Shown here in pieces: positions 25,646 to 50,866 of a stretch of DNA of 64,000 nt. Source of the stretch: Isurus oxyrinchus (lineage: Eukaryota); the NCBI GenBank assembly GCA_026770705.1, contig JANJGN010000724.1, positions 124,001-188,000 on the forward strand, in the 5' to 3' direction. A program made the position numbers and the translations under genes. Below the pieces are notes generated by a model. The model ran no database searches. It was not told the DNA's origin and saw only the letters and a program-made list of their open reading frames with translations. How positions within the stretch are numbered: the stretch's first letter is position 1; the number at the start of each line of letters is the position of its first letter.

Positions 25646-28600
25646 CTACAAGGTTGGGTTGGAGAAGCTGGGGTTGTTCTCCTTGGAGCAAAGGAGATTG
25701 AGGGGGGATCTGATCGAGGTGTACAAGATGATGATGGGTTTAGATAAGGCAGACAAAGAGAAGCTGTTGCCATTAGCTGATGGGACAAGGACTGGGGGAC
25801 ACAGATTGAAGGTTTTGGGCAGAGGGGGGATTTGAGGAGGAACTTTTTTACACAGCGAGTGGTAATGAGCTGGTACTCTCTGCCTACGAGGATGGTGGAA
25901 GCGGAGACGATGAACGATTTCAAAAGGAAATTGGATGGACACTTGAGGGGAAATAACCTTGCAGGGATACGGGGATAGAGCGGGGGAATGGGACTGACTG
26001 GATTGCTTTACAGAGAGACAGCATGGAGTCGATGGGCCGAATGCCGTTCTTCTGTTCCATGATGAGATTGTTGCTGTGCAAAGCTTTAAACTTCCTTTCA
26101 CTGTTTGTCTCTCCCAGACACAGACTCCAGTGATAGTGATAACCACAGCCACAAGGAATATCACAGCTCGTATTCCCAGGATCAGGATCACGTGCAGAAT
26201 CTCTCCTCCACTGTCTAGAGAACACACAGAAAGAAATCATCACTGACTCTCCGCTTTCAATCTCTCACTCTGGCTGAACAATCAAGCTTCATATCACTGC
26301 AACATTTGCTGTAATATTGACCCATCCACTGGGATTCAATGTGGAATGAATGTTTTCATTGTAAACACTCTAAGAGTGGACAATCGCAACTTTCCCCTTA
26401 GCGTGGAACATTGGTGAGAATGGATCATTGTGCTGTTGGACTCCCTGTCCAATGTTTCTCTCCATCGCTGTGTACAGGATTGTGCTGTAGAAAATTCTGG
26501 AAACGTTTAGTGCAGGGTGGAAATCCATCTCGGACGCGTGTGCGAATCGGGCAGGATCAAGATGGACTCCCCTTCGGACTTACACCCCCCGCTTAATAAA
26601 CAGTTCCAATCTTTACCCAGAGAGAGGGGAGAATGTGGAACTCGCTCCCACTGGGAGTGTGTGATGTGAACAGTATCGATGTATTTAAGGGGCAGGAGGG
26701 TCGGTAACCAGAGGGACACAGATTGACGAACCGGAGGGGGAGATGAGGAGAATTTGTTTTGACAGAGCGAGTTGTTGTGATCTGGAAGGTTCTGCCTGAA
26801 AGGGCAGTGGAAGCAGATTCAATAGGAACTTTCAAAAGGGAAATTGGATAAACACTTGAAGGAGGAAGATGGGGGCAAAGTGGAGTGGTGGTTAGTGGAT
26901 CTGATGGGATAGAACATTGAAAGACCTGGCACAGGCTCAATGGGCTGAATGGCCTCCTCCTGTGCTGTATCATTCTCCGCTTCCATGATCTCTCCCCCAG
27001 TCAGTAACCACTCCAGATCCCTCTTGAAGGTGACAGAGAAACAGCAACCACCACACCCACTGACAGCACATTCTCAAGGATCCCTACTCTCTGGGAAAAG
27101 ATGAACTCCCCAACATCCAGCCTATTCCTGCTTCCCGGAGAGTGTAAACCCTTCAGGGAGGCACTGAGGAAGTTTTCAATAAAATGACATCAAATCTACC
27201 GTTTGAGAAATAATTGAATTCCGATGAACTCACAGCTTGTGGAGCAATCTGGGAAGTAGAGTTGCTGGGAAAGCTGGGAAACACAAGGATTAAGGGCTAC
27301 AATGCCACCACTGGTGGGAGGCTGTAACTACAGCGTGACGTTTACATAGGCAGTCATCATTATAAACAGGGGCATTGCACATAATGGGAATTATGTGCAC
27401 GGAAATAGTGAGAACATTATGTAAGCTTTTCACCAGCAGGAATTCTCTTCCTAAACCTCTCCAACTCTCTCTTACTCTCAGATACACAAAGAAAATCACA
27501 CAGAATCAGATAAGGAAGAGTTGGGTTGGTGATTCATCAAAGGGTTAGGTTTCAGGAAGCTTCTTAAAAGGAGAGAGAGAGTTGGAGACGCAGAGAGTAT
27601 CTGTGAGTGTCTCTATGCATCTGAGTGTCTGTAATAGTAATTTCCATATTCTTCCATAAATATGAATGGGAACACAAATCCCAGATTTCAGGCCAACTCT
27701 CCAGTGCAGTACTGAGGGAGGTCAGGTAACCCATGAGGGAGTGAGTGTTAGTGTTTGTATGTGAGTGTGTCTTTGTGTGTGGTCATATATGTGTGTCTGC
27801 ACGTGTCTATTTAGGTGTGTATGTTCGATGGTGTTTGTGTCGTGTTCGAATCTGAGAGAGTTGTTGAAGTCTGTGTAACTCACGTTCCACACTGATGGTT
27901 ATGAACCCATCCACTGCTCCATGTTCTTTCTCTGCCACACACTGATAGTCTCCAGTGTCCCTGGATGTAACATGAGGAATCACCAACCACAGCTCATTGT
28001 TGGAACTTGTTCTGTTCATTTGGACATTCAGATGTCATGGCAGGAATCAAGAAGCCCGTTCACAGGATTACCAACAGAAAGTGAACAACAATTTATACTC
28101 AATGGGAAGAGAGTGCTGATTGGTTGGCAAGTGGTCTCTGATAGGTGGAGGTGTTGCCATGGAGAATGGTGTGTGCGAGATGTAAAGTTTAGACAGCTTG
28201 TCTCTTCATTCAGCAATAATCAAATAAAGATCAATTAACTTCTATCGACTTTGAAGCACTTAGAGAGGCCTTAGAATGTGGATACAGAGAACGGGCTGCA
28301 CTGTCAGAGGGTCTGCGCTGAGGGAGTGCTGATGTAGAATGAAAGGTGTATGTAATTACCTTGCACTGTTAGTACGAGGGTCCGCTCCGATGAAACAGAT
28401 GGATAACTCACTCTGCAGCTGAGATTGTGTCCGTGGTGTTTGAGTGATGGGATCAGGGTCAGAACAGAAGCATAGGACAGAGTGACACCATGCTGAGTTA
28501 CAGTGTTTGAAACTGATCCAGGTACGTCAGTGGGAGTGTCCCAGGTTAAGACAGGTGCTGCTGTTCCATTGCACGTTGTGTTGAAGGTGCAGCTTACATC

Positions 28601-28656
28601 CACACGCTTTCCTGCAATAATTTCAGCAGGGAATATCGTGGGTTTATCTGTGAAAT
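25646..28656 (-). pseudogene. Siglec-like copy E, inverted V-less fragment (C2 28360-28656, half domain 27884-28036, TM exon from 26214 reading through to 25646)
   Basis: Reverse complement of the copy C/D-type 3' region; no minus-strand signal or V exon anywhere in the window; an 11-nt deletion removes the normal stop. Confidence 0.85.
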
Positions 28657-29276
28657 CTAACAGACAGAGAATGGATCCTTTTAGAAAAATATAACGTGAA
28701 GCATCAGTTCAAATAGAAATCACAGTCCCACAAGAGAAAGCACTTTTACAAGGATGATATCAGAACTGAGAGGTTACAATGATCAGGAAAGATTTTCTTG
28801 CTCTTTGGCAGTAGTGTTTCTGTCTCTCAGCTTAATACACGTTCACTCCGAGACATGTGAATTGAGAATACTGGATGAGAGAAGAGGCTCAGACCAGAGA
28901 TTGGAGTTAAAAGCAGAATACTGTGGATGCTGGAAATCTGAAACCAAAACAAGATCATCCTTGTGAAGCTTTTTACCACCCTCTCCAGTGTCTCTATATC
29001 CTTTTCCAAATGCTGAGTCTGCTCTCCCCGAGCTGTGAGCTGTTCCTCCACCCTCACCCATTCTGGTCAAATCAAGGGTCACTGAGTGAGAGTGTATTAA
29101 TCTGAGTGACAGAGATTCAACAAGTGTAAAAATAGACAATTCTTTAATGATCATTGTAACCTCTCAGTTCTGATATCATCCTTGTAAAAGTGCTTTCTCT
29201 TGTGGGACTGTGGTTTCTATTTGAACTGATGCTTCACGTTATATTTCTCTAAAAGGATCCATTCTCTGTGTGTTAG

Positions 29277-30048
29277 ATTTCACAGATAAACCCACGATAT
29301 TCCCTGCTGAAATTATTGCAGGAAAGCGTGTGGATGTAAGCTGCACCTTCAACACAACATGCAATGGAACAGCAGCACCTGTCTTAACCTGGGACACTCC
29401 CACTGACGTACCTGGATCAGTCTCAAACACTGTAACTCAGCATGGTGTCTCTCTGACCTATCCTTCTGTTCTGACCCTGATCCCATCACTCAAACACCAC
29501 GGACACATCACAGCTGCAGAGTGAGATATCCATCTGTTTCATCGGAGCGGACCCTCGTACTAACTGTGCAAGGTAATTACATACATCTTTCATTCTACAT
29601 CAGCACTCCCTCAGCGCTGACCCTCTGACAGTGCAGCCCGTTCTCAGTATCCACATTCTAAGGCCTCTCTAAGTGCTTCAAAGTCGATAGAAGTTAATTG
29701 ATCTTTATTTGTTTATTGCTGAATGAAGAGACAAGCTGTCTAAACTTTACATCTCACATACACCATTCTCCATGGCAACAACTCCACCTATCAGAGACCA
29801 CTTGCCAACCAATCAGCACTCTCTTCCCATTAAGTATAAATTGTTGTTCACTTTCTGTTGGTAATCCTGTGAACGGGCTTCTTGATTCCTGCCATGACAT
29901 CTGAATGTCCAAATGAACAGAACAAGTTCCAACAATGAGCTGTGGTTGGTGATTCCTCACATTACATCCAGGGACACTGGAGACTATCAGTGTGTGGCAG
30001 AGAATGAACATGGAGCAGTGGAGGGGTTCATAACCATCACTGTGGAAC
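29277..30048 (+). pseudogene. Siglec-like copy F fragment (C2 29277-29572, half domain 29896-30048; TM exon deleted)
   Basis: C2 exon is 296 nt (1-nt deletion); junction at 30560/30561 skips about 1.66 kb relative to copy C. Confidence 0.88.
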
Positions 30049-31519
30049 GTGAGTTACACAGACTTCAACATCTCTCTCAGATTTGAACACTACACAAACA
30101 CCATCGAACATACACACCTAAATAGACACGTGCAGACACACATATATGACCACACACAAAGACACACTCACACACAAACACTAACACTCACTCCCTCATG
30201 GGTTACCTGACCTCCCTCAGTACTGCACTGGAGAGTTGGCCTGAATTCTGGGATTTGTGTTCCCATTCATATTTATGGAAGAATATGGAAATTACTATTA
30301 CAGACACTCAGATGCATAGAGACACTCACAGATACTCTCTGCGTCTCCAACTCTCTCTCTCCCTTTAAGAAGCTTCCTGAAACCTAACCCTTTGATGAAT
30401 CACCAACCCAACTCTTCCTTATCTGATTCTGTGAGATTTTCTTTGTGTATCTGAGAGTAAGAGAGAGTTGGAGAGGTTTAGGAAGAGAATTCCTGCTGGT
30501 GAAAAGCTTACATAATGTTCTCACTATTTCCGTGCACATAATTCCCATTATGTGCAATGCCACCTCGATCAGATCCCCCCTCAATCTCCTTTGCTCCAAG
30601 GAGAACAACCCCAGCTTCTCCAACCCAACCTTGTAGCTAAAATCCCTCATCCCTGGACCCATTCTGCTCAATCTCCTCCCCACCCTCTCAAGGACCCTCA
30701 CTTCCTTCCCAAAGTGAGGAGACCAGAACTGGACACAATACTCTAGTTGTGTCCTAACCAGAGCTTTATAAATGTTCAGCATAACCTCCCTGTGTTTGTA
30801 CTCAATCCCTCGATTTATGAAAAGCTTATTCTTTCCATCATCACAAACAACAATTTCCAAGCGGACTCCCATCAGCAGACAGAGTGCAATGAAACATCGG
30901 CATGCCTGCTTCTTAATGTACGGAGAGAAACCTGGAACGAGAGATTGTCCTTCTTCTCCTCAGCAAGCTGAAACTTTTCCTTATACCTGGTGCTCCCCAG
31001 TCCTGCTGTGTGGACACATCATAACCACGGCATTGTCTGGCTGTGTGCAGCCAACATGGTCGAATAGGAATGAACAGAAATGTGACGTTGCTAAACTCTG
31101 TTCTCTGATTGGAATGTGCTTTCTGAATGCTGCACCTTTTTCATGCTGCGATAGATTGTAAGAAGCATTTGGGTGATGAATAAAATTACATTGATTAACA
31201 CAAGTGATTAAAATGCACAGGCTGTTCTGTAGATATTTACACATTAAAATTCTCATTTTACTGCAAATTCTTGGCTCAAAGACATTACTTCATGTTGTGA
31301 TGATTTTCCAATCATGTGAATTATTGTGCCCATCTTTATAATGGAAACTTCCCATGTAAACATGTCACATTGTAGTTAGGCACTCCTGCCATTGGGTGGT
31401 GTGATATCAAAGCTGCCTTGCTGCTCAGAAACAGCGAGAAATATTCCTGTTCTAAATTTGAAGTTAGTGAGACAAAGGCATTAGATGCAATTTTGTGAAA
31501 CTTGTACAATGTTCTTTAG

Positions 31520-34030
31520 ATAGTGGAGCACTCCCTCAGTACTGACCCTCCAACAGTGCAGCACTCCCTCAGTACTGACCCTCCAACAGTGCAGCACTCC
31601 CTCAATACTGATCATACAAGAGTGCAGCACTCCCTCAGTACTGACCAACTGACAGTGCAGCACTCCCTCAGTACTAACCCTCCAACAGTGCAGCACTCAC
31701 TCAGTACTGACCCTCCAACAGTGCAGCACTCCCTCAGTACTGACCACACAAGAGTGCAGCACTCCCTCAGTACTGACCAACCGACAGTGCAGCACTCCCT
31801 CAGTACTGACCCTCCAACAGTGCAGCACTCCCCCAGTACTGACCATACAAGAGTGCAGCACTCCCCCAGTACTGACCATACAAGTGTGCAGCACTCCCTC
31901 AGTACTGACCAACCGACAGTGCAGCACTCCCTCAGTACTGACCCTCCAACAGTGCAGCACTCCCTCAGTACTGACTATACAATAGTGCGGCACTACATCA
32001 GTATTGACCCACCAAGTGTCCAGCACTTCCTCAATACTGACCCACTGACAGTGCAGCACTCCCTCAGTACTGACACACCAAGAGTGCAGCATTCCCTCAG
32101 TACTGACCCTCCGACAGTGCAGCACTCCCTCAGTACTGACCCTCCAACAGTGCAGCACTCCCTCAGTACTGACCCTCCGACAGTGCAGCACTACCTCAGT
32201 ACTGACCCGATGACAGTGCAACACTACCTCAGTACTGACCCTCTGACAGTGCAGCACTACCTCAGTTCTGACCCTCCAACAGTGTAGCACTCCCTCAGTA
32301 CTGACCCTCTGAATGTGCAGCACTCCCTCAGTACTGACTCTCTGACAGTGCAGCACTCCCTCAGTACTGTCCCTCTGACAGTGCAGCACTCCCTCAGGAA
32401 CAAGACTCTGACAGTGCAGCACTCCCTCAGTACTGACCCTCCGACAGGGCAGCACTCCTCAGAACTGTCCCTCCAAGAGTGCAGCACTACCTCAGTACTG
32501 AGCCTCCGACAGTGCAGCATTCCCTCTGTACTGACCCTCTGACAGTGCAGCACTACCTCAGTACTAACCCTCCGACAGTGCAGCAATACCTCAGTTCTGA
32601 CCCTCCAACAGTGCAGCACTCCCTCAGTACTGACCCTCTGAATGTGCAGCACTCCCTCAGTACTGACCCTCTGACAGTGCAGCACTCCCACAGTACTGAC
32701 CTTCTGATAGTGCAGCACTCCCTCAGTACTGACCCTCTGACAGTGCAGCACTCCCTCAGTGCTGACCCTCTGACAGTGCAGCACTCCCCCAGTACTGACC
32801 ATACAAGAGTGCAGCACTCCCCCAGTACTGACCATACAAGTGTGCAGCACTCCCTCAGTACTGACCAACCGACAGTGCAGCACTCCCTCAGTACTGACCC
32901 TCCAACAGTGCAGCACTCCCTCAGTACTGACTATACAATAGTGCGGCACTACATCAGTATTGACCCACCAAGTGTCCAGCACTTCCTCAATACTGACCCA
33001 CTGACAGTGCAGCACTCCCTCAGTACTGACACACCAAGAGTGCAGCATTCCCTCAGTACTGACCCTCCGACAGTGCAGCACTCCCTCAGTACTGACCCTC
33101 CAACAGTGCAGCACTCCCTCAGTACTGACCCTCCGACAGTGCAGCACTCCCTCAGTACTGACCCGATGACAGTGCAACACTACCTCAGTACTGACCCTCC
33201 GACAGTGCAGCACTACCTCAGTTCTGACCCTCCAACTGTGTAGCACTCCCTCAGTACTGACCCTCTGAATGTGCAGCACTCCCTCAGTACTGACCCTCTG
33301 ACAGTGCAGCACTCCCTCAGTACTGTCCCTCTGACAGTGCAGCACTCCCTCAGGAACAAGACTCTGACAGTGCAGCACTCCCTCAGTACTGACCCTCCGA
33401 CAGGGCAGCACTCCTCAGAACTGTCCCTCCAAGAGTGCAGCACTACCTCAGTACTGAGCCTCCGACAGTGCAGCATTCCCTCTGTACTGACCCTCTGACA
33501 GTGCAGCACTACCTCAGTACTAACCCTCCGACAGTGCAGCAATACCTCAGTTCTGACCCTCCAACAGTGCAGCACTCCCTCAGTACTGACCCTCTGAATG
33601 TGCAGCACTCCCTCAGTACTGACCCTCTGACAGTGCAGCACTCCCACAGTACTGACCTTCTGATAGTGCAGCACTCCCTCAGTACTGACCCTCTGACAGT
33701 GCAGCACTCCCTCAGTGCTGACCCTCTGACAGTGCAGCACTCCCTCAGTACTGACCCTCTGACAGTGCAGCACTCCCTCAGTACTGACCCTCTGACAGTG
33801 CAGCACTCCCTCAGTACTGACCCTCTGACAGTGCAGCACTCCCTCAGCACTGACCCTCTGACAGTGCAGCACGCCCTCAGGAACAATACAACAATACTCT
33901 GACAGTGCAGAACTCCTTTGCTGCTGACCCTCCAACAGAGCAGCACTTCTTCAGACCTGATCCTGCGACAGAGCAGCACCCCATCAGAACTGACCCCCTG
34001 ATGGTGCCGCACGTGCTCAGTATTTACCCT
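31520..34030 (+). repeat. 33-bp minisatellite array (ctcagtactgaccctccgacagtgcagcactcc), about 75 units, with a 956-bp higher-order duplication
   Basis: Direct tandem units; variant series at 31831 recurs at 32787. Confidence 0.97.
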
Positions 34031-34351: not shown

Positions 34352-34800
34352 GTAAGTAACGGAACGACTGGAATTCACTTCCACGACCAACACCGTCCTT
34401 TGTTGATGTTGTGACTTTATAAAGACAGATTCCAATGATTGATGCCTTTGAAAGATTTCTACTGATTATTGAGATCTGGGTGTGAGACTCAAGTCTGTTG
34501 TACAGAACATCTTTCTAGCTCAAGGGATGAGGGAAGAGCAGGGACATGAGCTTTGGGGTGTCCTGAGCAGGTGAAAGGCGATATAGAAATGCAAGTCCTT
34601 CATTGTTTTTCTTTTTCAAGCCTTGTAACTCTCGCCAGAGCACCTATCATCCCACAGAGAATCAAATTAATCTGTGAAGACATTGTCTAAAAGGAGTTCT
34701 GATCCCTCGAGAGCTGTCGGACAAGAGGTGAGGTCTCATTAACTCCTTTCTCTTTCAGAGTTTGAGAGTGAGAAGCTGTTGAAATATCTGGGAGTGGACA

Positions 34801-34840
34801 ATGATCGGGAAATATTACTGCCTCCTGTCACTTCTCCAAG
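34801..34840 (+). CDS. Copy A signal-peptide exon, coding part (MIGKYYCLLSLLQ)
   Basis: ATG at 34801, hydrophobic run, caag|gtaat phase-1 donor; homologous exon present in copies B, C and D. Confidence 0.85.
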
Positions 34841-37800
34841 GTAATATCATCGTCAGCTCAGATAGATTTATGGTTAATAGTCTTCGTAAAAGATCATTCT
34901 TATTGAGCTCTGATTGGGAAGTGATTCAGCAGTGAGCCAGTGTACAAACTCACACCAAGTCCCATTCACCCATCATCCCTGTGCTCACTGATATACACTG
35001 ACTCCCTGTCTGACAGCAGAATTGGAGGAGTGCAGAGATCACAGAGGGTTGTAGGTTTGGAGGAGGTTACAGAGACAGGGAGTGGAGCGGAGTGATGGAG
35101 GGATTGGAAATCAAGTGTGAAAATAATCACATCGAGGTGTTGCTGGACTGGGAGCCAGTGTAGGTCAGCGAGTGACTTGTGGGGTCGGGGTGGAGGTTTG
35201 GGGAGGTGAAAGTTTGAGTAGAAAATTGGACACAAAATTCAGGGGATGAAGTCTATCTTGTGGCTAGGACTCTGACAGCAATGGCCTGAAATTAGTGTCT
35301 TTTGCTGATTTTAGTCAGAATTTCCCATGAAGACAGCACAGCAGCTCCTAGAATAGACAGGCTGTTCAGTGTCACACTTCTGTCCATTCTCACCATGCTA
35401 GATACTTCAATAAGGGAACAAGATAACTGAAAGAGAGAAGGAAGGCAAAGCTGTCTGTGTGTAAAGGTGTCAATATTCAGTTTGTATATTTGTCTTTCTC
35501 TCGACACATGCAGAGCTCAGGCTAGAGGCACTTTGTTAGTGTGTTTCACAGTGTCTGCTGGAGTAGGGTCAGTGCTGAGCTTGGGGACAAGTCAGTCTAC
35601 AATGCTGCATCGGAATCAACAATACAACAATATGGGGTTTGGTTCAGAAATAATCCCCTAGACAATGAGGATCCAAAGAGATTCCTTAGACAATGAGGAT
35701 CCAGGGTTAAATATTGATATTTCTCTCCCCAGTTGGACTGTCACAAGAGTGGAAAGGTGACACTCCACGAGAGGTGACAGCGCAGGAAGGTTCGTGTGTA
35801 CAGATGCGGTGTCACTACAGTTATCCAGCATATTTTGAAAACAAACGACAAGTCGGAATCTGGTTAAATAATGAGAAATACAAATTCTGGCCTCCCATTG
35901 CCTTTCACTCCAAGGATCACAGTCACGAGTTACCACGGTTCCACCATCGGACCCGGCTGTCTGGAGACCTGAAAGATGGCGACTGTTCCCTGATTATAAA
36001 CAACATCAGACGGGAAGATGCAGGACCTTATTTTTTCAGAATAGAATTTGACAATGGTCCGAGCCATAACTATTACCCTGTAACCCAGCTTCAGGTTTCT
36101 GGTAAGTGCTGTGTTATAATTACTCAACAATTCACATTCAACACTCAATGGGAAATAACACAAACTGTGATGTTTACACATTAACACAAAACACAGTTTA
36201 TTTTCACAGACCGTCTGATTCTCAATAACCTGGTGATAGCTTCCAGTTCAGTCCTTAAGCAACCTCTAATACTCACTTTAATATCAATGATTAAATGTAT
36301 TGACTGTGTCCATCAATGTTATCAGGTTATCCACTCCCATCAGTCTACCTAATGCTTTTTAAATGTCTAACAATTTGACAAAAGAAGGATGTGCATTCCT
36401 ATAGCGCCTTACACCACCTCAGCAAACTTCAAATCATTTCACAGACAATGAAGAAATTCTTGAAGTATAGTCACTGTCTAACGTGGCAGTGAGTTTGTAC
36501 ACAGGAAGCTCCCACAGAGAGCAATGGGATCAGTGACCCAGATCTCTGAGAGAATGATGAGCCAGGGTTCCATGAGCTGTGGGCTGCTCCATCACCCACA
36601 CCCCAGTGTTGGCAATTCAAGGTTCTGGGAGTGAAAGTGTATTCAGCTCAGTGACACATTCCCCACCAAGTTTGAAAATAGGAAAGTTGCTGCTGATTGT
36701 TGTGACCTCTCAGTTCCCATCTCATCCTTGGAAACCTGCTTTCAAAATACAAAAGCAATTCTCGCATTTCCATAGCGCCTTTCACCACCTCAGGACGATC
36801 CTAAATCAATTCACAGCCAATGAAGTGATTCTTGAAGCACACATTCTCCCCACTCTCTGGGTAAAGAAGTTTCTCCTGAATTCCCCATTGGATTTATTAG
36901 TGAGGATCTTATATTGTCAGCCTCTGGTTTTGTTCATTGTGAGGAGTGGAAACACTCTCTCCATGTCTACTCGATCAAAACCTTTCATTACTTCAAAGGT
37001 CAAATGAGGTCACCCCTCAACCTTCTCTGTTCACGGGAACAGAGTCCCAGCCTGTACATCCTCTCCTGATAGGTAAAGCCTCACATTGCTGAGATCATCC
37101 TTGTGAAGCTTTTTACCACCCTCTCCAGTGTCTCTATATCCTTTTCCAAATGCTGAGTCTGTTCTCCCCGAGCTGTGAGCTGTTCCTCCACCCTCACCCA
37201 GTCTGGTCAAATCAAGGGTCACTGAGTGAGAGTGTATTAATCTGAGTGACAGAGATTCAACAAGTGTAAAAATAGACAATTCTTTAATGATCATTGTAAC
37301 CTCTCAGTTCTGATATCATCCTTGTAAAAGTGCTTTCTCTTGTGGGACTGTGGTTTCTATTTGAACTGATGCTTCACGTTATATTTCTCTAAAAGGATCC
37401 ATTCTCTGTGTGTTAGATTTCACAGATAAACCCACGATATTCCCTGCTGAAATTATTGCAGGAAAGCGTGTGGATGTAAGCTGCACCTTCAACACAACGT
37501 GCAATGGAACAGCAGCACCTGTCTTAACCTGGGACACTCCCACTGACGTACCTGGATCAGTGTCAAACACTGTAACTCAGCATGGTGTCACTCTGACCTA
37601 TACTTCTGTTCTGACCCTGATCCCATCACTCAAACACCACGGACACACTCTCAGCTGCAGAGTGAGATATCCATCTGTTTCATCGGAGCGGACCCTCGTA
37701 CTAACGGTGCAATGTAAGTATGGACATCCTTCATTCTGCGTTAGCTGGAATAGTATAAAATGTGCACAGCAAGCTCCCACATACTGCATTTTGTTGACCA

Positions 37801-40800
37801 ACAAACCATTGGTCTTTAACTGGTAAAAGGTGACTCCTGACAGGCAGTACATCCTTAATACTGACTCTCCGACAGTGCATCATGGACTCATAGACTCATA
37901 GACACTTACAGGACAGAAGGAGGCCATTTAGCCCACAATATCCATGCTGGTCAGCAACTACCTCCCCAAGTGAATTACCTCACACTTTTCCAGGTTGAAT
38001 TCCATTTGCGTCGTGATCATTCCCCCTATATTTAAGTCCAATTCATTTATATACACCACAAACAGCAAGTGCCCCAGCACTGAGCCCTGTGGAACCCCAC
38101 TGGAAACAGACATTCAGTCACAGAAACATCCCTCCACCATCACCCTCTGCTTCCTGCCTCAGCCAATATTGGATCCAATGTGCCACTTTGCCTTGGATCC
38201 CATGGGCTCTTACTTTCTTGGCCTCTCTGCCAAGAGGCACCTTATCAAAAGCCTTCCTCAGCCCATGTCGACCACAACAAAGGCATTACTCTCATCAACA
38301 CTCCTGGTTACCTCCTCAAAAGATTTGATCAGGTTTGTCAAACATGACCTTCCCTTAACAAATCCATGCTGAATATCCCAGATTAATCCCTGTCTCTCCC
38401 AGTGCAGATTCATTCTGTCCTTCAGAATTCTTACTAGTAACTTCCCCACCACCGAGGTTAGACTGACTGGCCTGTAATTTCCTGATCTATCCCTTCCTCC
38501 CTTTTTTAATAATGGGACAACATTAGCCATCCTCCAGTCCTCTGGCACCTCACCTGTGGCCAGAGAGGATTTGAAAATTACTGCCAGGGCCCCTGATATC
38601 TCTTCCCTTGCCTCCCTCAACAGCTTTGGATTCATCTCATCCAGGCTTGTGGATTTATCCACTTTTCAGGCCACTAAACCCACTAGTACCTCCTTTCTCC
38701 GCGTTAATTTCCTCTCATATTTCACTGCCCTCCACCCTGATGTTATACCTGCATCATCCTTTTCCATTGTGAAGACTGATGCAAAGTATTCATTGAGGAC
38801 TGTACCCACGTCTTCCAGGTCCACACACACATTACCTCGATAGTCCCTAATCGGCCCCACTCTTTACTGAGTTATTCTCCTGTTCTTTACATATTTAAAA
38901 AACCCCTCTGGGTTTTGCTTTATTCTACCCACCAGTGCTTTCTCATGCACTCGCTTATCTTTCCTAATGTCCTTTTTCAGTTCCCCTCTGCACTATTTAT
39001 ACTCCTCTAGGGACTCTGCTGTATTGAGCCCTCAGTATCTGCCATAAGCTTCTCTTTTTTCTCAATCCTAACCTTTATGTTCCTTGTCTTCCAGGGTTCT
39101 CCAGACTTGGTCTCCCTCTTTGTCTTTACAGGAAGATATCTGCTCTGTACTCTCGCTATTCCCTCCTTGAATGCCTCCCACTGCTCTGACACAGTTTTAT
39201 CTGCAAAGAGCTTCTCCCAGTCCACTTGGGCCCAATCATATCTCATCTTAGTAAAATTAGCCTTTCCCCAGTTTAGAATTTTTATTCCCAGCACAAACTT
39301 ATCCTTCTCCATAAATGTCCTAAATCCAATTGAGTTCCAGTCACTATCTCCCCTACTGATACGCTTTCCAACTTCCCCGGCGCTTTTCCATATATTAGGT
39401 CCAGAACTGTCCCCTCCCTTGTTGAGCTTTCTATGCACAGGCTAAAAATCTTCTCCTGGATGCAACTTCAGAATTTTTCTCCCTCCCTACCTTGCTCACT
39501 AAAGCTGTCCCAGTTAATATTTGGGTAGTTAAAATCCCTGAGTATTACTGCTTTGTTATTCTTACACATCTCTGAAATGTGATCACATGTTGGATTGTCC
39601 ATCTCTCCCTGACTGTTTGTTGGTTTTATATCTTGAGTCTATGAGTTCACTGGTTGATTAAATTCGAATTGCACTGCTTCACATACACTTGTTAGTTGAT
39701 AAAAACAAAAAAACTGCAGATGCTGGAAATCCAAAATAAAAACAGAATTACCTGGAAAAACTCAGCAGGTCTGGCAGCATCGGCGGAGAAGAAAAGTGTT
39801 GACGTTTCGAGTCCTCATGACCTCAGTTCTGTCAAAGGGTCATGAGGACTCGAAACATCAACTCTTTTCTTCTCCCCCGATGCTGCCAGACCTGTTGAGT
39901 TATTCTTAGCTGATGCTCGCTATCAATAACCAAGAGAGACCGACATTAGAACAAGCTGATTATTTATTGTAACAGAGGGCAGAGCACTAAATCCTTGCCT
40001 GCTCCCACAGCCACCTCCAGCTCTAGACTTACAGTTAACCAGTGGCCCACACTGTCCAGTGATTGGTCAGTACTGTCACATGGTTTATCCACTTGTATTC
40101 TCTTAAAGGTACCTGGCACTCCACATTATCACAGGAGGCCTATAGTACACACATAACAGCGTGTTTGCCTCCTCAGCACTGACCCTTCTACAGTGCAGCA
40201 CTCCCTCATTACTGTCTCTCTAATAGTATAATGATCCCTCAGTAGTGCTCCTCCAACATTGCACTGGTCAATCAGAACTGACGCTCTGACTGTGCAGTTT
40301 TACCTCAGCAGTAACCCTCCTACAGTGCAGCACTCCCACAGTACTGTCCCTCCTACAGTGCAGCACTCCCTCAGGACTGACCCTCTGACAGTGCAGCACT
40401 CCCTCAGCACTGAACCTCTGGCAGTGCAGCACTCCCTCAGTACTGACTCTCTGACAGTGCAGCACTCCCTCAGTACTGACCCTCTGACAGTGCAGCACGC
40501 CCTCAATACTGAACTGAAGTGTCTGCCTGGATTACGGGCTATGTGGTGAAAGAACCTACATTGACATCACACTTTTCACATTCTCAGTGTCTTTCAAAGT
40601 GCTTCACAGTCAGTGTAAGTTAACTGATCTGTATTTGTTTTTAGACGCACCACGGAATCTCTCAATTACTTCTCCAGATATGATGAACGCTTCATCGATC
40701 AATATAATTGAGGGGAATTCTGCAGTGATAATCTGCTCTGTCGAGAGCTTCCCAGCTTCTAACCTGACGTGGCGACATCTTAATGTCCCAATGAACAGAA

Positions 40801-42770
40801 CAAGTTCCAACAATGAGCTATGGTTGGTGATTCCTCACGTTACATCCAGGGACACTGGAGAATATCAGTGTGTGGCAGAGAATGAACATGGAGCAGTGGA
40901 GGGGTTCCTAACCATTACTGTGGAACGTGAGTGTACACAGACTTTAAAATTTCTCTCATCTCCGAACACATATACTCAGATGCTCTCCCACGCACACACA
41001 CACAAGCACTCACAAATGTACAGACCCAAAGTGCATGCACACACACAATCCCACACTCATGAGCACACAGAAAGACACACTCACACACTAACACAGTAGT
41101 ACACACTTCCCTGTGAGTTACCTGACCTCCCTCAGTACTGCACTGGAGAGTTCTCCTGGATTCTGGGATATATGTTCCCATTCATATTTATCGAAGAATA
41201 TCCAAATTACAAAGTCTATTCCAGAAACTCACATGCACAAAGATTCCAACTGATACTCCCCACCTCTCTGTGTATCTCTCTCCTCCTTTAAGAAGCTTCC
41301 TAATCCGTAACTCTTGCCTGTCCTAACTCCTCCTTATAATGCCCTGTGTCAAATTTTTTGTGTATCTGAGAGAAAGGGAGAGATACGGAAGTTTAGGAAG
41401 GGATTTCCTGTTAGTGAAGAGCTTACTTCTTTTTCTCACCTTTCCAGTGTTCAGTTTTGCCATCATGTCCAATGACCCTGTTTATAATGGGGGCATCCTA
41501 TGTAAACGTCACACTGTCTTTACATCCTCCCATCAGTGGTGGCACTGTGGTGCTTAAGCTTGCACCTCCCAGCTTTTCAGCCAACTTCACTTCACAATTT
41601 GCTACATATGGTGTAAGTTCATCGAAAGTAACATATATCAAACGGTAGATTTGATAATACAGTTTATTGAAAGGTTCATCCGCGCTCTGGGAAGGGTTTA
41701 CACTCTCCAGGAAGCAGGAATAGGCTGGATGTTGGGGAGTTCATCTTTTCCCAGAGAGTAGGGATACTCGGGAATGTGCTGTCAGTGGGTGTGGTGGTTG
41801 CTGTTTCTCTGTTGCCTTCAAGAGGGATCTGGAGTGGTTACTGACTGGGGGAGAGATCATGGAAGCGGAGAATGATACAGCACAGGAGGAGGCCATTCAG
41901 CCCATTGTGCCTGTGCCAGGTCTTTCAATGTTCTATCCAATCAGATCCACTAACCACCACTCCACTTTGCCCCCACCTTCTTCCTTCAAGTGTTTATCCA
42001 ATTTCCCTTTTGAAAGTTCCTGTTGAATCTGCTTCCACTGCCCTTTCAGGCAGCACCTTCCAGATCACAAGAACTCGCTCTGTCAAAACAAATTCTCCTC
42101 ATCTCCCCCTCCGGTTCATCAATCTGTGTCCCTCTGGTTACCGACCCTCCTGCCCCTTAAATACATTGATACTGTTCAGCTCGACCACTCCCAGTGGGAG
42201 CGAGTTCCACATTCTCCCCTCTCTCTGGGTAAAGATTGGAACTGTTTATTAAGCGGGGGGTGGAAGTTCATGGGGGAGTCCATCTCGATCCTGCCTGATT
42301 TGCACACGCGTCCGAGATGGATTTCCACCCTGCACTAAACGTTTCCAGAATTTTCTACAGCACAATCCTGTACACAGCGATGGAGAGAAACATTGGACAG
42401 GGAGTCCAACAGCACAATGATCCATTCTCACCAATGTTCCACGCTAAGGGGAAAGTTCCGATTGTCCACTCTTAGAGTGTTTACAATGAAAACATTCATT
42501 CCACATTGAATCCCAGTGGATGGGTCAATATTACAGCAAATGTTGCAGTGATATGAAGCTTGATTGTTCAGCCAGAGTGAGAGATTGAAAGCGGAGAGTC
42601 AGTGATGATTTCTTTCTGTGTGTTCTCTAGACAGTGGAGGAGAGATTCTGCACGTGATCCTGATCCTGGGAATACGAGCTGTGATATTCCTTGTGGCTGT
42701 GGTTATCACTATCGCTGGAGTCTGTGTCTGGGAGAGACAAACAGTGACAGGAAGTCGACAGACTGTTTGA
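34801..42770 (+). CDS. Siglec-like activating receptor, copy A, intact: join(34801..34840,35733..36101,37417..37713,40645..40926,42631..42770), 375 aa; signal-V-C2-C2-TM(Arg)-short tail
   Basis: Five exons with GT/AG sites and phase-1 introns sum to 1128 nt with no internal stop. V-set shows the Siglec Cys pattern (SCVQMRC, GDCSL) and YFFRIE; the first C2 has the extra Cys (SCTFNTTC); the second begins YAP; TM is ILHVILILGIRAVIFLVAVVITIAGVCVW. Confidence 0.9.
35733..36101 (+). CDS. Copy A Siglec V-set Ig exon
   Basis: tctctccccag| acceptor and g|gtaagt donor, 369 nt; B-strand Cys pair, C-strand Trp, E-strand Cys, DAGPYFFRIE. Confidence 0.93.
37417..37713 (+). CDS. Copy A first C2-type Ig exon
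   Basis: gttag| and t|gtaagt, 297 nt; DKPTI..VSCTFNTTC..LTW..LSCRV..LTVQ. Confidence 0.92.
37890..40170 (-). mobile_element. CR1 LINE ORF2 fragments in copy A intron 3, with nested insertions
   Basis: PEDWRMANVVPLLKKG..NYRPVSLTS..QHGFVKGRSCLTNL. Confidence 0.9.
39700..39905. mobile_element. Palindromic short interspersed element (related pieces at 17042-17192, 24240-24335, 7310-7400, 28905-28952, 52600-52735, 61450-61585)
   Basis: ctcagcaggtctggcagcatcg...gtcctcatgacc followed by its reverse complement; possibly Penelope-derived (inference). Confidence 0.65.
40170..40510 (+). repeat. 33-bp minisatellite array in copy A intron 3
   Basis: Tandem units. Confidence 0.9.
40645..40926 (+). CDS. 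Copy A second C2/I-type Ig exon
   Basis: tttttag| and c|gtgagt, 282 nt; YAPRN..EGNSAVIICSVESFPASNLTW..DTGEYQCVAENEHG. Confidence 0.93.
42631..42770 (+). CDS. Copy A transmembrane/short cytoplasmic exon (HSGGEILHVILILGIRAVIFLVAVVITIAGVCVWERQTVTGSRQTV*)
   Basis: ttctctag| acceptor, in frame with the previous exon, hydrophobic stretch containing Arg, TGA at 42768-42770. This frame is not shown in the ORF track. Confidence 0.85.
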
Positions 42771-42899
42771 AGCTTTGTACAGCAACAATCTGGTCAGTCA
42801 GTGCGGACAAATAACGTGTGATGTTGGGTTAAATAGTAAAGAAACTGGTCAGTGTCCTGGTTAGAATCACCTTCGTATCAGAGAGGCATTCCAGCACAG

Positions 42900-43490: not shown

Positions 43491-43847
43491 AAGCTTATTC
43501 TTTCCATCAGCACAAACAGCAATTTCCAAGCGGACTCCCATCAGCAGACAGAGTGCAATGAAACATCGGCATGCCTGCTTCTTAATGTACGGAGAGAAAC
43601 CTGGAACGAGAGATTCTCCTTCTTCTCCTCAGCAAGCTGAAACTTTTCCTTATACCTGGTGCTCCCCAGTCCTGCTGTGTGGACACATCATAACCACGGC
43701 ATTGTCTGGCTGTGTGCAGCCAACATGGTCGAATAGGAATGAACAGAAATGTGACGTTGCTAAACTCTGTTCTCTGATTGGAATGTGCTTTCTGAATGCT
43801 GCACCTTTTTCATGCTGCGATAGATTGTAAGAAGCATTTGGGTTATG

Positions 43848-43853
43848 AATAAA
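43848..43853 (+). terminator. Candidate poly(A) signal AATAAA for copy A
   Basis: About 1.1 kb after the stop; same motif at the equivalent position in copies C (~56557), F (~31179) and E (~25100, minus). Confidence 0.45.
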
Positions 43854-44197
43854 ATTACATTGATTAACACAAGTGATTAAAATGTTCAGCCTGTTCTGTA
43901 GATACTTATGGATTAAAATTCTTATTTTGCTGCCAGATTCTTGGCTCAAAGACATTACTTCATGTTGTCACTTTTTCCAGTCAGATGAATTCCTGTGCCC
44001 ATCTTTATAATGGAAATTTTCAATGTAAACATGTCACATTGCAGCTGCACACAATTGCCAGTAGGTGGTGTGATATCAAAGCTGCCTTGCTGCTCAGAAA
44101 GAGAGAGAAATATTCCTGATAAATGCATGAACTTCATGTGTGCATCAGACACAGGCATCAGATGCAATTTTGTGCAATTTGTGCAATGTATTTTAGA

Positions 44198-44900: not shown

Positions 44901-45565
44901 CATGCTTAGTATTTCTCCTCCAACAGCATTTTTAAATATAAACCCTCAGAGCCATGGTAGAAATTTGAAGTTAACAAACAGCAAACAGAAAGATCACAGA
45001 GTCATGATGAATTGCCAACAGTTTGATTCTGTTGTAACGCATTGTGAAATTACGCACTCATTCCTAATGCCTGTTTACTCACTCCTTTACTACTTCCTCA
45101 TTTTGTCTCACAGAGACACATCAACCCTTTCTCATTAAATACACAGAGGGGGCAGCACAGGAAGAGGTCATTCAGCTAAAGCAGAGCGTGTGGGCAGTTC
45201 CTCCCCAGGCGAGCAGTCGGACAGGTCCTGGGTAAGTAACGGAACGATTGGAATTCACTTCCACGACCAACACCGTCCTTTGTTGATGTTGTGACTTAAT
45301 AAAGACAGATTCCAATGATTGATGCCTTTGAAAGATTTCTACTGATTATTGAGATCAGGGTGTGAGGCTCAAGTCTGTTGTACAGAAAATCTTTCTAGCT
45401 CAAGGGATGAGGGAAGTGCAGAGACATGAGCTTGGGGGCGTCCTGAGGTGGTGAAAGGTGCTATAGAAATGCAAGTCTTTCATTGTTTTTCTTTCTTAAA
45501 GCCTTGTAACTCTCTGCAGAGCAACTATCATCCCACAGAGAATCAAATTAGTCTGTGAAGACATT

Positions 45566-46202
45566 GGGCTGAATTTCCAGCCTGTCGAGCGGGTGGGCCT
45601 GACCCAATCTCCAGCGGGCGGGGAGCCAATCCCCACCGGAGAAGCGGGACCCGCCGCCATTTTAAGTGGGCGTGCCAATTAAGGCCCACCCAGCGTGATG
45701 TCCGGCGGGAAGGGCTATGCCCTTCCTGTGTGGGCCGGGGGTGGGGGGTGGGGGTGGGGACATTCCCCAAATGCGTGAGTGCGCTCTGTCACACATGCGC
45801 ATGATAAAGCCCACATCACCCTGAGGCTAAGTGCTGCCTCAGGGAGATCGCTGAAAGGTTTTCAAACAATCAAAATAGAAAAATAAAAAAATCCTCAACA
45901 TGTCCCCCTCACGTGACAATGTCACGCTAGATGGGACATGTTAATAAACTGCACCAAAACTTGAATAAACTCTTTTAAAACCGACATGAGTCCTCGTCCC
46001 GCCGGTGGATGAGGTTTCATGTTTTCTCTAGTTGTCGCTGGAGCTCCTGCCCTGCCCACCAGCCTTAAGGTTGGACCGGCAGGTCGGTTCATTGTTTAAA
46101 TGTTCCTGTCAATGGCTTCAATTGGCCATTGACAGGTCGGCGGGCCCTCAGCTGATTTCACTGCACGCCTGTCTCCTGCTCACCGACAGCGAAACTCTGC
46201 CC
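45566..46202. mobile_element. PIF/Harbinger-like MITE, 637 bp
   Basis: Imperfect TIRs gggctgaatttc / gaaactctgccc and a 3-bp ATT duplication; empty site gacattgtct in copies A, C and D. Confidence 0.8.
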
Positions 46203-46321
46203 ATTGTCTAAAAGCAGTTCTGATCTCTGGAGAGCTGTCGGACAAGAGGTGAGGTCTCATTAACTCCTTTGTTTTTCACAGCTTGAGAGTGAGAAGCTGA
46301 TGAAATATCTGCGAGTGGACA

Positions 46322-49164
46322 ATGATCTTACTTCCTCCTGTCACTTCTCCAAGGTAATATCATCGTCAGCTCGGACAGATTTATGGTTAATAGTCTTTGT
46401 AAAAGATCATTCTTATTGAGCTGTGATTGGGAACCGATTCAGCAGTGAGCCAGTGTACAAACTCACACCAAGTCCCATTCACCCATCACCCCTGTGATCA
46501 CTGATATACACTGACTCCCTGTCTGACAGCAACAGAAAATTAAAATCCAGGTCATCCTGTAGAAATCCCTCCAAAATTTTGCAACTCTCCCTATCCATGT
46601 TACCTCCTCCAGCCCATACCAACCTCCCTATCCCTGTAACATCTTCCAGCACATATATTACTCCCTACCTCTGTAACCTCGCCCTGCTCCTACAATCCTC
46701 CCTATCTCAGTAACCTCCTCCAGCCCCTACCACTCTCCCTAACTCTATAACCAACTCCAGCCCCTATATCCTTCGCTATCTCTGTTAATTTCTCCAGCCC
46801 CTACAAACCTCCCTTTCTCTGTAACCTCGTCCACCATTACAACCCTCCCTATTTCTGTAATCTCCTCCAGTACCTACAACCCTCCGAGATCTCTGCACTC
46901 CTCCAATTCCAGCATCTTGACCATCCCCCGATTCCCATCATTCCATTATTGGCGGCCGTGCCTTCAGCTGCCTGGGCCCCGAGCTCTGGAATTCAAAATC
47001 AAAATTCAGGGATGAATAAACTCCAATAGTCCATTCCCTGAGAGGCCATGATTACATCACAGCAGCATTCAGAATAGACAGAGGGTCCAGCCCTCACACT
47101 TCTTGCACAGTTTCACCATAATGAAATGAATTAACTGAAAGGTAAACCGTCAGTGTAGAGAGATGAGATATTTACACAGTTTCCCTGTGTATCTTGTAGA
47201 CACTGTGTTGGGTGGAAGACTGGCTTCACTAAACAGGGTCCTGAGGACCATGAGCCAATGTAGAATGAAGTTGTCCACTCCTGTGTCCAGGATTCTCTTC
47301 CATCCATTGTGAAAACTTGGGGAGTTCCTTGTGTGTCCTGTAGATGGTCCACACTGCAGCCACTGTGCCCCAGTGATGGAAGGGGTGGATATCGAGTCTA
47401 GTGAAGCTACAAAACATCCAGAGTTAAATATTGATATTTCTCTCCCCAGTTGGACTGTCACAAGAGTGGAAAGGTGACACTCCACGAGAGGTGATAGCGC
47501 AGGAATATTCGTGTGTACAGATTCCATGTCATTACAGCTACCCATCGTGTCTGGAAAACCAACTGCAAATTGGAATCTGATTTAATGACAAAGTCTTGAT
47601 AAGATTCTTTATAGCCTTTCACTCCAAGGATAATAATCGCGAGTTACCACTGTTCCAACATCGGACCCGGCTGTCTGGAGACCTGAAAGATGGTGACTGT
47701 TCCCTGATTATAAACAACATCAGACGGGAAGATGCAGGACCTCATTTTTTCAGCATAAAATTTGACAATGGTCCGAGCCATAACTATTACCCTGTAACCC
47801 AGCTTCACGTTTCTGGTAAGTGCTGTGTTATAATTACTCAACAATTCACATTCAACACTCAATGGGAATGAACACAAACTCTGACGTTTACATAATAACA
47901 CTGTTATGACATGGCAGGTGATGTGTGCCAAGTGGAGAGAATCCACAAAGGGAACTTGGCCAAGCATAATTTCCAACTACACACCCCCTTGAAGGCAACA
48001 ATCCCAATAAATCTTAAATGGAAATGGGAATCCGGCAAGGTTACTGCAGCACCCACTTGACAGTGTAATTCCAAAGTCTTTTAACACACCTTTAAGTACT
48101 GGAGCAGCAAAAGTGAACAGAAACGTTTTACCCAAGGCTGCTTCACCTACTGTACCTTTCAAGAAATTCATGTCCCCCTCCCACATAACCTTCCATCCTT
48201 CTTTATGTTGGTTTCTCTCTCTCCAATGTATAAAATCCCATTGTTGCACCTTTCTTGGGAAATACACTTTTCCCAAAATATAAAAATCTTTCATGTTGTC
48301 AATATGGCCCATTCCTTTTGGGAAGAATACACATAATAACCTTGCCCTGGTTATCTTGTTAATTATAAACACCCAACTACCCTTTGACAATCAAACATTC
48401 TCTTTACTGATCTAAAATTTCATTTACAGCTTTTCTGTGGAACCCTCATCCTAGCTTGTCCATCCCCATTTCAGAAGTCTGCTTTGCACCAAACTCTATT
48501 GATAATTTTAACCTCATAGTTGATCTGACTCAAATTCAATTAAATCAGACCCACAGACGGAACCATCCACATTCATTCCCATAAGCCGACAATATTATTC
48601 TGAAAAATATCATAGTTTCATCACAACATAAAACACAGTTTAGTATAACGCAGAGTCTGATTCTCAATAACCTGGTGATAGCTTCCATTCAGTCCAAAAG
48701 CAACCTCTAATACTCACTTTAATATCAATGATTAAATGTATTGAATGTGTCCATCAATGTTATCAGGTCATCCACTCCCATCTATCTCTAATCTTAAGGC
48801 TGTGATTTCTATTTGAACTGATGCTTCACGTTATATTTCTCTAAAAGGATCCATTCTCTGTCTGTTAGATTTCACAGATAAACCCACGATATACCCTGCT
48901 GAAATTATTGCAGGAAAGCGTGTGGATGTAAGCTGCACCTTCAACACAACGTGCAATGGAACAGCAGCACCTGTCTTAACCTGGGACATCCCACTGACGT
49001 ACCTGGATCAGTCTCAAACACTGTAACTCAGCATGGTGTCACTCTGACCTATACTTCTGTTCTGACCCTGATCCCATCACTCAAACACCACGGACACACT
49101 CTCAGCTGCAGAGTGAGATATCCATCTGTTTCATCGGAGCGGACCCTCGTACTAACTGTGCAAG
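46322..49164 (+). pseudogene. Siglec-like copy B pseudogene (signal 46322-46353, V 47450-47815, C2 48869-49164; no further exons)
   Basis: 8-nt deletion in the signal exon, Trp TGG>TGA at 47578-47580, essential Arg>Ser (HFFSIK), 1-nt deletion in C2, truncated at a minisatellite array. Confidence 0.9.
47902..48625. mobile_element. LTR-like insertion, 724 bp, specific to copy B
   Basis: TG...CA ends, flanks acac/acat; empty site in copies A, C and D. Confidence 0.75.
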
Positions 49165-49379
49165 GTAAGAACGGACACCCTTCATTATACATTCGCTGGA
49201 ACAGTCTAGATGACGCACAGCCGGATCCCATAGAAAGGTATTCTGATGACAATCAGATAATCTGTTTTTTAAAGAAAATGGTGACCAGAATACAATTAAT
49301 AACAGTTTCTGAACATTAACATAGGGGCTTTTATGTCCAGCCAAGGGGCTGATAGAGCAGAGCAGGAATCGCAATGTAC

Positions 49380-50043: not shown

Positions 50044-50866
50044 ACTGGGGAATTTCAGTCTACTCTGTGGGGCAGGCATCTCCTGAATGGGGTCTTGAAC
50101 CCCAGAAAATTCTACAACATACTGACTCCCTGAGTTCGGGTGTGAAACCCACTGACCCACAGGAGAAACTCCTGGTTAATGACTGTCCATCAGTGAGCAG
50201 AAATATCACCACAGGGTCAGGACACAAAGCGTTAACAGTTCACCAACATCTCAAAACATGAGCTGCTCTGTCACTTTGATCCAACTTCCTCATTTTGTCT
50301 CACAGAGACACATCAACCCTTTCTCATTAAATACACAGAGGGAGCAGCACAGGAAGAGGTCATTCAGCCCAAGCAGAGCGTGTGGGCAGTTCCTCCCCAG
50401 GCGAGCAGTCAGACAGGTCCTGGGTAAGTAACGGAACGATTGGAATTCACTTCCACGACCAACACCGTCCTTTGTTGATGTTGTGACTTTATAAAGACAG
50501 ATTCCAATGATTGATGCCTTTGAAAGATTTCTATGATTATTGAGATCTGGGTGTGAGGCTCAAGTCTGTTGTACAGAAAATCTTTCTAGCTCAAGGGATG
50601 AGGGAACTGTAGATACTTTGGGATGCCCTGATGTGGTGAATGGTGCTATAGAAATGCAAGTCCTTTGTTGTTTTTCATTCTTAAAGCCTTGTAACTCTCT
50701 GCAGAACACCTATCATCCCACAGAGAATCAAATTATTCTGTGAAGACATTGTCTAAGAGCATTTCTGATCTCTCGAGAGCTGGTGGACAAGAGGTGAGGT
50801 CTCATTAACTCCTTTCCCTTTCAGAGTTTCAGAGTGAGAAGCTGATGAAATATCTGGGAGTGGATA

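Follow-up and report, generated by a model that had tools for sequence, protein, structure and literature searches.

Human Siglec-14 is an activating receptor coupled to the adaptor DAP12 (PMC4042635). Siglec-15 is adaptor-coupled through a lysine in its transmembrane (TM) segment (PMC7226832), and activating KIR of macaques that bear an arginine use FcR-gamma (PMC8102735). Fish are said, on the basis of teleosts, to have only Siglec-1, CD22, MAG and Siglec-15 and to lack CD33-type inhibitory or activating Siglecs (PMC7226832). According to a 2014 survey, FcR-gamma and its partner receptors arose at the origin of bony fish (PMC4016189). No dedicated paper on shark Siglecs, DAP12 or FcR-gamma was found in the open literature. 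Here, we analyzed a stretch of 64,000 nucleotides (nt) from the shark Isurus oxyrinchus (assembly GCA_026770705.1, contig JANJGN010000724.1, positions 124,001 to 188,000; hereafter the window), which contains a family of Siglec-like genes. The gene under study is referred to as copy C, and the other family copies in the window as copies A, B, D, E and F. On the forward strand, from 34801 to about 43875, copy C is an intact six-exon gene of an elasmobranch-specific Siglec branch and the predicted activating arm of a paired receptor system.

Joining the coding exons of copy C with a local script (34801-34840 + 35733-36101 + 37417-37713 + 40645-40926 + 42631-42770) yields a coding sequence of 1128 nt, which translates into 375 amino acids (aa) followed by a TGA at 42768-42770. 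The introns are all of the GT..AG type and every exon is entered in phase 1. The product is a type I membrane protein with the layout signal-V-C2-C2-TM. An initial annotation, made from the letters of the window alone, had proposed a spliceable 375-aa protein of this layout, and the gene model bears it out. The features of copy C are as follows, all on the forward strand.

34801..34840, forward strand: coding part of exon 1, with the ATG and the start of the signal peptide (MIGKYYCLLSLLQ); phase-1 donor GT at 34841
35733..36101, forward strand: exon 2, Siglec-type V-set domain (Pfam, PDB phmmer, AlphaFold (AF2), Foldseek)
35804..35893, forward strand: hypervariable patch of the V exon, exon codons 24-53, B-C to C-C' region (copy C against copy F, alignment A1)
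36038..36040, forward strand: AGA codon of the F-strand Arg (YFFRIE), the sialic-acid-binding Arg of Siglecs (alignment)
37417..37713, forward strand: exon 3, first C2-set domain, C2a (Pfam C2-set_2; PDB matches)
40645..40926, forward strand: exon 4, second C2/I-set domain, C2b (Pfam Ig_3/I-set)
42631..42792, forward strand: exon 5, encoding the stalk, the TM helix and the 12-aa tail; the stop is followed by 22 nt of 3' untranslated region (UTR) and a GT donor at 42793
42675..42677, forward strand: CGA codon of the TM arginine (LILGIRAV) (alignment)
42768..42770, forward strand: stop TGA (TAA at the same codon in copy E; lost through an 11-nt deletion in copy A)
43511..43875 (3' end approximate), forward strand: exon 6, non-coding last exon (3' UTR); AG acceptor at 43509-43510, AATAAA at 43848

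Searches of Pfam and of the PDB sequences as well as fold prediction were run on single exons of copy C. The leader MIGKSYFLLSLLQ also begins public shark Siglec-like proteins. Exon 3 is recognized as C2-set_2 (2.2e-9) and matches domain 2 of MAG, CD33, Siglec-8 and Siglec-10 in the PDB. Its donor reads CAAT before the GT in copy C, compared with CAAG before the GT in every other copy of the window. Exon 4 is recognized as Ig_3/I-set and is intact in copy C only among the window copies. A scan of 34000-46000 against Rfam gave no match.

Exon 2 matches Pfam V-set (8.1e-12) and also Ig_CD22, the family of Siglec first domains (38 bits, cut-off 27). A phmmer search of the PDB retrieved Siglec-5 (7.5e-13), MAG, Siglec-7, CD33, sialoadhesin, Siglec-8 and Siglec-10, with Siglec-15 and CD22 at lower scores, and the nine top-scoring molecules were all Siglecs (E 7.5e-13 to 7.5e-9). 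For the V exon, an AlphaFold model computed together with 24 relatives reached a predicted local distance difference test (pLDDT) score of 91.8. Its 45 top-ranked Foldseek matches in the PDB were all Siglec V domains (template modeling score 0.78-0.88), the best of them MAG and sialoadhesin. The model superposes on the ligand-bound sialoadhesin, MAG, Siglec-7 and CD33 with template modeling scores of 0.83-0.88.

Siglecs are marked by an intra-sheet disulfide between strands B and E, by an extra Cys that bonds to domain 2 and by a C-x5-C in domain 2. In the V exon of copy C, strand B contains a C-x4-C, DCSLII supplies a further Cys and the YFFR strand is free of Cys, and exon 3 carries SCTFNTTC, which fits the C-x5-C of domain 2. 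In Siglec-5, CVLVPC and NCSLSI are the aligned counterparts of CVQMRC and DCSLII, and the cysteines C21, C26 and C84 of the V domain are invariant in an alignment of 25 relatives. YFFRIE pairs residue by residue with Siglec-5 YFFRVE and with MAG YYFRGD. The Arg of this strand (R102) is nearly invariant, at least 90%, in the 25 relatives of alignment A2. The Siglec Cys pattern and the F-strand Arg had both been claimed earlier, and both hold up once aligned to Siglec-5 and, for the Arg, also to MAG. V-set homology, strand-F Arg and Cys pattern taken together place copy C in the Siglec family, and its V domain would be expected to bind sialic acid. Between copies C and F, 19 codons of the V exon have changed, 17 of them nonsynonymously and two synonymously. 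The changes are concentrated, with 17 of the 19 falling inside codons 24-53.

The membrane-spanning end points to an activating receptor. The peptide encoded by exon 5, SGGEILHVILILGIRAVIFLVAVVITIAGVCVWERQTVTGSRQTV, carries the TM Arg as its residue 15, which sits 8-11 residues into a hydrophobic span of 26-29 residues (mean hydropathy 2.5-2.9). The tail ERQTVTGSRQTV comprises 12 aa without a Tyr and ends at the stop. Copy E has TAA at the position of the TGA of copy C, hence the codon has changed and the stop is preserved. The Arg is retained in all three TM exons of the window (42633, 55437 and 26212, the last on the minus strand). The initial annotation had reported the TM Arg, the 12-aa tail lacking Tyr and the retention of the Arg in copies A, C and E, all of which we recovered.

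The motif ILGIRA is identical in 11 sequences from five species, and the neighboring residues of the helix are variable. These sequences comprise the three TM exons of the window (copies A, C and E), three proteins of Carcharodon carcharias (P0187, P0173, P0177), four of catsharks (Scyliorhinus torazame P0059 and P0006; S. canicula P0160 and P0161) and one of Chiloscyllium punctatum (P0021). Six of the 11 share the end ...GSRQTV, and P0187 ends in ...GNRQPV. The S. canicula and C. punctatum predictions stop short of ...GSRQTV, with C. punctatum ending in ...VKGS. The basic TM residue and the short tail without an immunoreceptor tyrosine-based inhibitory motif (ITIM) or switch motif (ITSM) give copy C the sequence traits of activating Siglecs of the Siglec-14/15/16 type. 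The TM Arg of copy C would then serve for adaptor coupling. The earlier reading as a Siglec-family gene with an activating-type membrane cassette is supported, and this cassette is kept across shark orders.

Evidence from RNA was drawn from runs compared with the window as assembled contigs labelled 'RNA?', with X1 and X2 representing organism A and X4 organism B. Contigs of X1, X2 and X4 contain spliced joints, which shows that RNA is present in these three runs and that the Siglec-like family is transcribed. Run X17 has no exon joint and looks like DNA. The joint of exon 3 to the TM exon was seen in all three spliced runs (X1, X2, X4). The joints of exon 3 to exon 4 and of exon 2 to exon 3 were each seen in one run, and the contig joining exons 3 and 4 has five letters absent from all window copies.

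A contig of X2 follows the window to 42792 and continues into an exact match of 43511-43540. The letters from 42793 onward start with GTCAGT and 43509-43510 is AG. A contig of organism B covers 42629-42792, which approximates the limits of exon 5. The joint from 42792 to 43511 and the contig of organism B together show that the TM exon is internal and ends 22 nt past the stop. Exon 6 is a non-coding 3' UTR exon and the stop lies 22 nt upstream of the last exon junction. That the TM exon is internal and spliced after the stop to a non-coding exon 6 is new in this analysis. We found no ITIM or ITSM in exon 6 in the frame continuing through the stop and no inhibitory-type TM exon in the window. 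Splicing of the TM exon into ITIM-bearing exons had been named at the outset as the outcome that would speak against an activating receptor; the splice falls after the stop and leads into an ITIM-free exon.

An open reading frame (ORF) of 129 aa spans exon 6 (43441-43830) and is open in four copies, which differ at 2-6 of 390 nt, with 0-1 synonymous and 1-6 nonsynonymous codon changes. We rejected exon 6 as coding sequence given that the near-identity extends into the upstream intron, no Pfam family is recognized and the changes are mostly nonsynonymous. The open frame is read as part of a homogenized tract (about 42300 to 43850) and not as evidence of coding. The tract covers the end of intron 4, the TM exon and exon 6 and is 96-100% identical among copies A, B, C and E, except for 42793-42907, which has no counterpart in copies A and E. 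The other introns of the copies sharing this tract are only 81-92% alike. The tract looks like the outcome of gene conversion homogenizing the signaling end, opposite to what is seen in primate Siglec-5/14.

With the V exon as query, HMMER retrieved 1011 proteins library-wide, including 28 below 1e-30. The close relatives are automatic predictions from sharks, rays and skates, named Siglec-5, -7, -8, -10, -11, -12, -13 and -14, CD33-like or MAG-like. The nearest proteins are from Carcharodon carcharias, with identities of 100% for C2a (P0184), 93% for the TM segment (P0173, P0177) and 86% for the V domain. These identities bear out the cartilaginous-fish origin suggested in the initial annotation and place the window in a lamniform shark, either Carcharodon or a close relative. 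The white-shark proteins P0184, P0155 and P0176 carry similar ectodomains on a different TM helix and have ITIM/ITSM-type tails, with LLYANx and TEYAQIRF among them. The C2a domain of P0184 is 100% identical to that of copy C, and the V domain of P0155 is 80% identical to copy C and 91% to copy F. Hence, inhibitory counterparts with a near-identical ligand-binding part, as expected of a paired receptor, exist in the white shark, the closest species with a public genome, and not in this window. Inhibitory partners outside the window had been guessed at before, and these three ITIM-bearing proteins match that guess. The tail motifs of the shark relatives (LLYASI/LLYANx and TEYAQIRF) recur as the same pair in tetrapod rows (LHYASL, TEYSEI). 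This suggests a shared ancestry of the tails, which is not a property of copy C.

The V-domain tree was built from 34 rows and 122 columns, and its deep branches are weak. The window copies fall into a starred clade with the activating P0187 and the inhibitory P0155 of the white shark, and activating and inhibitory V domains interleave. The elasmobranch family forms one clade (92/95). The tetrapod CD33-related Siglecs form a separate clade (100/100) with no shark row, and shark MAG-like and CD22-like proteins lie outside the elasmobranch family clade. Orthology with mammalian CD33-related Siglecs was considered and rejected, as the tree places the shark family outside their clade. The lineage-specific expansion postulated in the initial annotation agrees with the elasmobranch clade, and its wording that the expansion parallels the mammalian CD33-related cluster is apt in the absence of orthology in the tree.

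The other copies in the window differ widely in their state of preservation.

24338..28887, minus strand: copy A, with C2a, half of C2b, TM exon (Arg) and exon 6; signal and V exons absent; stop lost to an 11-nt deletion
28952..32220, forward strand: copy B, with frameshifted C2a, half of C2b, TM exon deleted and exon 6 kept; no signal or V exon
45078..49230, forward strand: copy D, a pseudogene, with a signal exon shortened by an 8-nt deletion, a V exon that has acquired a stop and Arg>Ser, frameshifted C2a and no TM exon
50284..57619, forward strand: copy E, with signal exon, V with a 1-nt deletion, C2a, decayed half of C2b, TM exon (Arg) and exon 6
59109..64000, forward strand: copy F, with signal exon, intact V (86% to copy C), intact C2a and half of C2b

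Copy F stays open up to the edge of the window, which ends before the TM exon of this copy. Copies A, B, E and F are mutually 95-96.5% identical over kilobases and have all lost the 5' half of exon 4, with homology resuming only at 40774. The exon 4 remnant of copy E contains a TAG and has a TT donor. The introns of copy C are 81-92% identical to those of copies E and F (8-19% divergence). The intron divergence and the sole intact exon 4 indicate that copy C belongs to an older, distinct lineage and is not the head of the young set. The claim that copy C heads a young tandem family does not stand, since the young set consists of copies A, B, E and F; both the intron divergence and the exon 4 half-deletion shared by these four copies exclude it. 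Copies A and B stand head to head, with their C2a ends meeting at 28887-28952. The junction is an inverted duplication, the breakpoint of which removed the V and signal exons of both. In the TM exon of copy A (26040-26125, minus strand), the 11-nt deletion that removes the stop lets the frame run on (KGSLKLCTATISSWNRRTA...). Copy A has no GT donor at the place matching the 42792 donor of copy C, and any tail that it makes would depend on splicing.

Several further elements accompany the repeat units. Exon-like pieces lie about 450-1100 nt before each signal exon on the forward strand (34259-34351, 45139-45231, 50331-50423 and 59182-59262), with AG ahead and GTAAGT behind, and encode ...SSTGRGHSAQAERVGSSSPGEQSDRSW. 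They are 65-81% identical to the juxtamembrane cytoplasmic segment of the white-shark CD33-like protein P0013, which has an inhibitory-type tail. The pieces may be relics of an inhibitory tail carried in every repeat unit or an unrecognized exon. Between the gene copies lie arrays of a satellite with a 33-bp unit, AGTGCAGCACTCCCTCAGTACTGACCCTCCGAC (31522-33996, 40171-40512, 44197-44898, 49353-50046, 56920-58900, 14959-15321 and 24300-24755). One array lies inside intron 3 of copy C, and the arrays have very deep coverage in all runs. Intron 3 also contains a near-perfect hairpin of 150 nt (39755-39905), an inverted repeat with 85% complementarity and no Rfam match. Its depth is extreme in RNA-type runs (241,479 in X1), and it is probably a repeat resembling miniature inverted-repeat transposable elements. 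Upstream of the Siglec copies, a separate V-set-like exon lies at 7883-8290 on the forward strand (Pfam V-set 0.0056, below the cut-off). It is 33% identical to P0111, an unnamed database protein of 184 aa, and may be part of another Ig-superfamily gene.

We suggest that the V domain of copy C would read sialylated ligands through its fast-changing loop patch. The TM Arg, buried in the outer third of the helix, would recruit an adaptor with an acidic TM residue and with an activation motif of the immunoreceptor tyrosine-based type (ITAM), such as FcR-gamma or a DAP12-like chain. ITIM-bearing paralogues with near-identical ectodomains would give the opposite signal. Copy C would thereby act as the activating arm of a paired-receptor system, for which the primate pair of Siglec-5 and Siglec-14 is the model (PMC4042635), and this is the most likely reading. 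Several observations weigh against it. The letters of the RNA contigs are those of paralogues at three diagnostic places. The last letters of exon 3 are CAAT in copy C, compared with CAAG in the contigs and in all other window copies. At its end, exon 2 has CAGG in copy C, compared with CACG in the contig and in copies D and F. Position 40820 is G in every contig and A in copy C. Not one of the contigs listed has copy C's own letters at these places. Contigs lose rare variants, so that the absence or presence of copy C letters is weak evidence either way. Nearly all spliced contigs carry paralogue letters, and expression of copy C itself is putative. The 2014 survey, moreover, found no FcR-gamma in sharks (PMC4016189).

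Such a pattern of letters would be expected if copy C were silent or dying and open merely by chance, with two-domain V-C2-TM(Arg) genes of the E/F type, in the window and in other parts of the genome, as the working receptors. The joint of exon 3 to the TM exon reads CAAG joined to ACAGTGG in three runs, with the donor letter shared by the other five copies instead of that of copy C. The contig of exons 2 and 3 has the letter of copies D and F, and the G at 40820 recurs in all contigs. Three of the five other copies have disabling changes in coding exons, and two are without V and signal exons. We nevertheless consider a silent copy C unlikely. All five of its coding exons have an uninterrupted frame and good splice sites despite the 8-19% divergence of the introns, and the exons are far better kept than the introns (C2a 96-98% at the aa level). 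Exon 4 shares 87-91% identity with C2b domains of the expressed type in proteins of white and basking shark. Among the window copies, only copy C has the 42792 donor, and this donor is used in RNA; the joint of this donor to exon 6 fits copy C best, with copies A and E lacking the donor. A contig of X1 spanning 310 nt (42330-42639) has no mismatch to copy C, and 1-2 mismatches to copies A and E.

A protein could also be made without being activating. It would then serve as a tailless decoy or co-receptor, with the TM Arg used for retention, oligomerization or pairing with a non-ITAM partner. No particular adaptor can be read from the sequence, and the failure of the 2014 survey to find FcR-gamma in sharks (PMC4016189) would fit a decoy as well. 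The constancy of the cassette makes such a role very unlikely, as three shark orders all retain the Arg, invariant in a variable hydrophobic helix, together with the fixed, short tail and the stop. The Arg lies at a depth that we take to be between those typical of FcR-gamma and DAP12 partners, which counts in favor of a decoy. Invariant Arg, short tail and conserved stop together form an adaptor-coupled signature as in Siglec-14 with DAP12 (PMC4042635) and macaque KIR with FcR-gamma (PMC8102735). The V domain might alternatively no longer read sialic acid and use the hypervariable patch for a protein or pathogen ligand. The clustering of 17 of 19 codon changes between copies C and F in one patch of 30 codons, and the 17 of 19 that are nonsynonymous, would agree with such a ligand, as would the loss of the V-domain Arg in copy D. 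This is distinctly unlikely, though, considering that 25 relatives keep the YFFRIE strand, its Arg and the three Cys with little or no change and that the model superposes on ligand-bound Siglecs. The patch also corresponds to what we assume to be the loop region tuning glycan specificity in known Siglecs, which speaks against a change of ligand class. Copy C as the activating arm of a sialic-acid-reading pair is the reading carried forward here.

The cassette is already present in public shark predictions and a single gene is unsurprising by itself. At variance with the published overviews, the locus and the automatic annotation of sharks and rays together describe a large elasmobranch Siglec family, with ITIM tails, a conserved Arg-TM cassette and a diversifying loop patch. 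We tentatively propose that sharks might have built their own paired Siglec system apart from the mammalian CD33-related cluster. In such a system, near-identical lectin heads, each with a rapidly evolving loop patch, would be placed either on ITIM tails or on a shared and homogenized Arg-TM cassette coupled to an ITAM adaptor, e.g., FcR-gamma. If true, adaptor-coupled activating lectin receptors would have existed at the base of jawed vertebrates, earlier than published surveys allow. For the oldest jawed vertebrates still alive, the locus thus offers a concrete case in which paired lectin receptors can be tested, as well as a handle on the identity of the adaptor.

The nearest comparison is with shark proteins sharing the cassette. 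These include predictions of Carcharodon carcharias named 'CD33-like' and 'Siglec-12' (XP_041037xxx-type; P0187, P0173, P0177), XP_072325011.1 and XP_072326180.1 of Scyliorhinus torazame, 'Siglec-13/14' of S. canicula (P0160, P0161) and XP_072409577.1 of Chiloscyllium punctatum. Leader, V domain, C2a and ILGIRA helix are in common with copy C, whereas the layouts differ, being V-C2-TM, V-V-C2-TM or with several C2b repeats. The V-C2a-C2b-TM(Arg) layout, with each domain present once as in copy C, was absent among the fetched shark proteins, none of which was identical to copy C (best V 86%). MAG (Siglec-4), CD22, sialoadhesin and Siglec-15 share the V-set fold, the Arg and the Cys pattern with copy C, but differ in domain number, tails and tree position. 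Activating macaque KIR and receptors of the LILRA/OSCAR type resemble copy C in their short tail and in an Arg placed in the outer part of the TM helix (for macaque KIR, PMC8102735). Unlike copy C, they have unrelated C2-type ectodomains and no lectin V domain.

Human Siglec-14 resembles copy C in its three Ig-like domains, the essential Arg of the V-set domain, the basic TM residue and the short tail free of ITIMs (PMC4042635). Human Siglec-14 and the shark family are also alike in having an inhibitory twin with a near-identical ectodomain, which is Siglec-5 in the case of Siglec-14 (PMC4042635). Yet the two are non-orthologous, as the tree groups the shark V domains in a clade apart from the tetrapod CD33-related Siglecs. 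In primate Siglec-5/14, gene conversion homogenizes the first two domains, whereas in the shark the segment from the TM exon to exon 6 is homogenized (96-100%) and the V patch is diversified.

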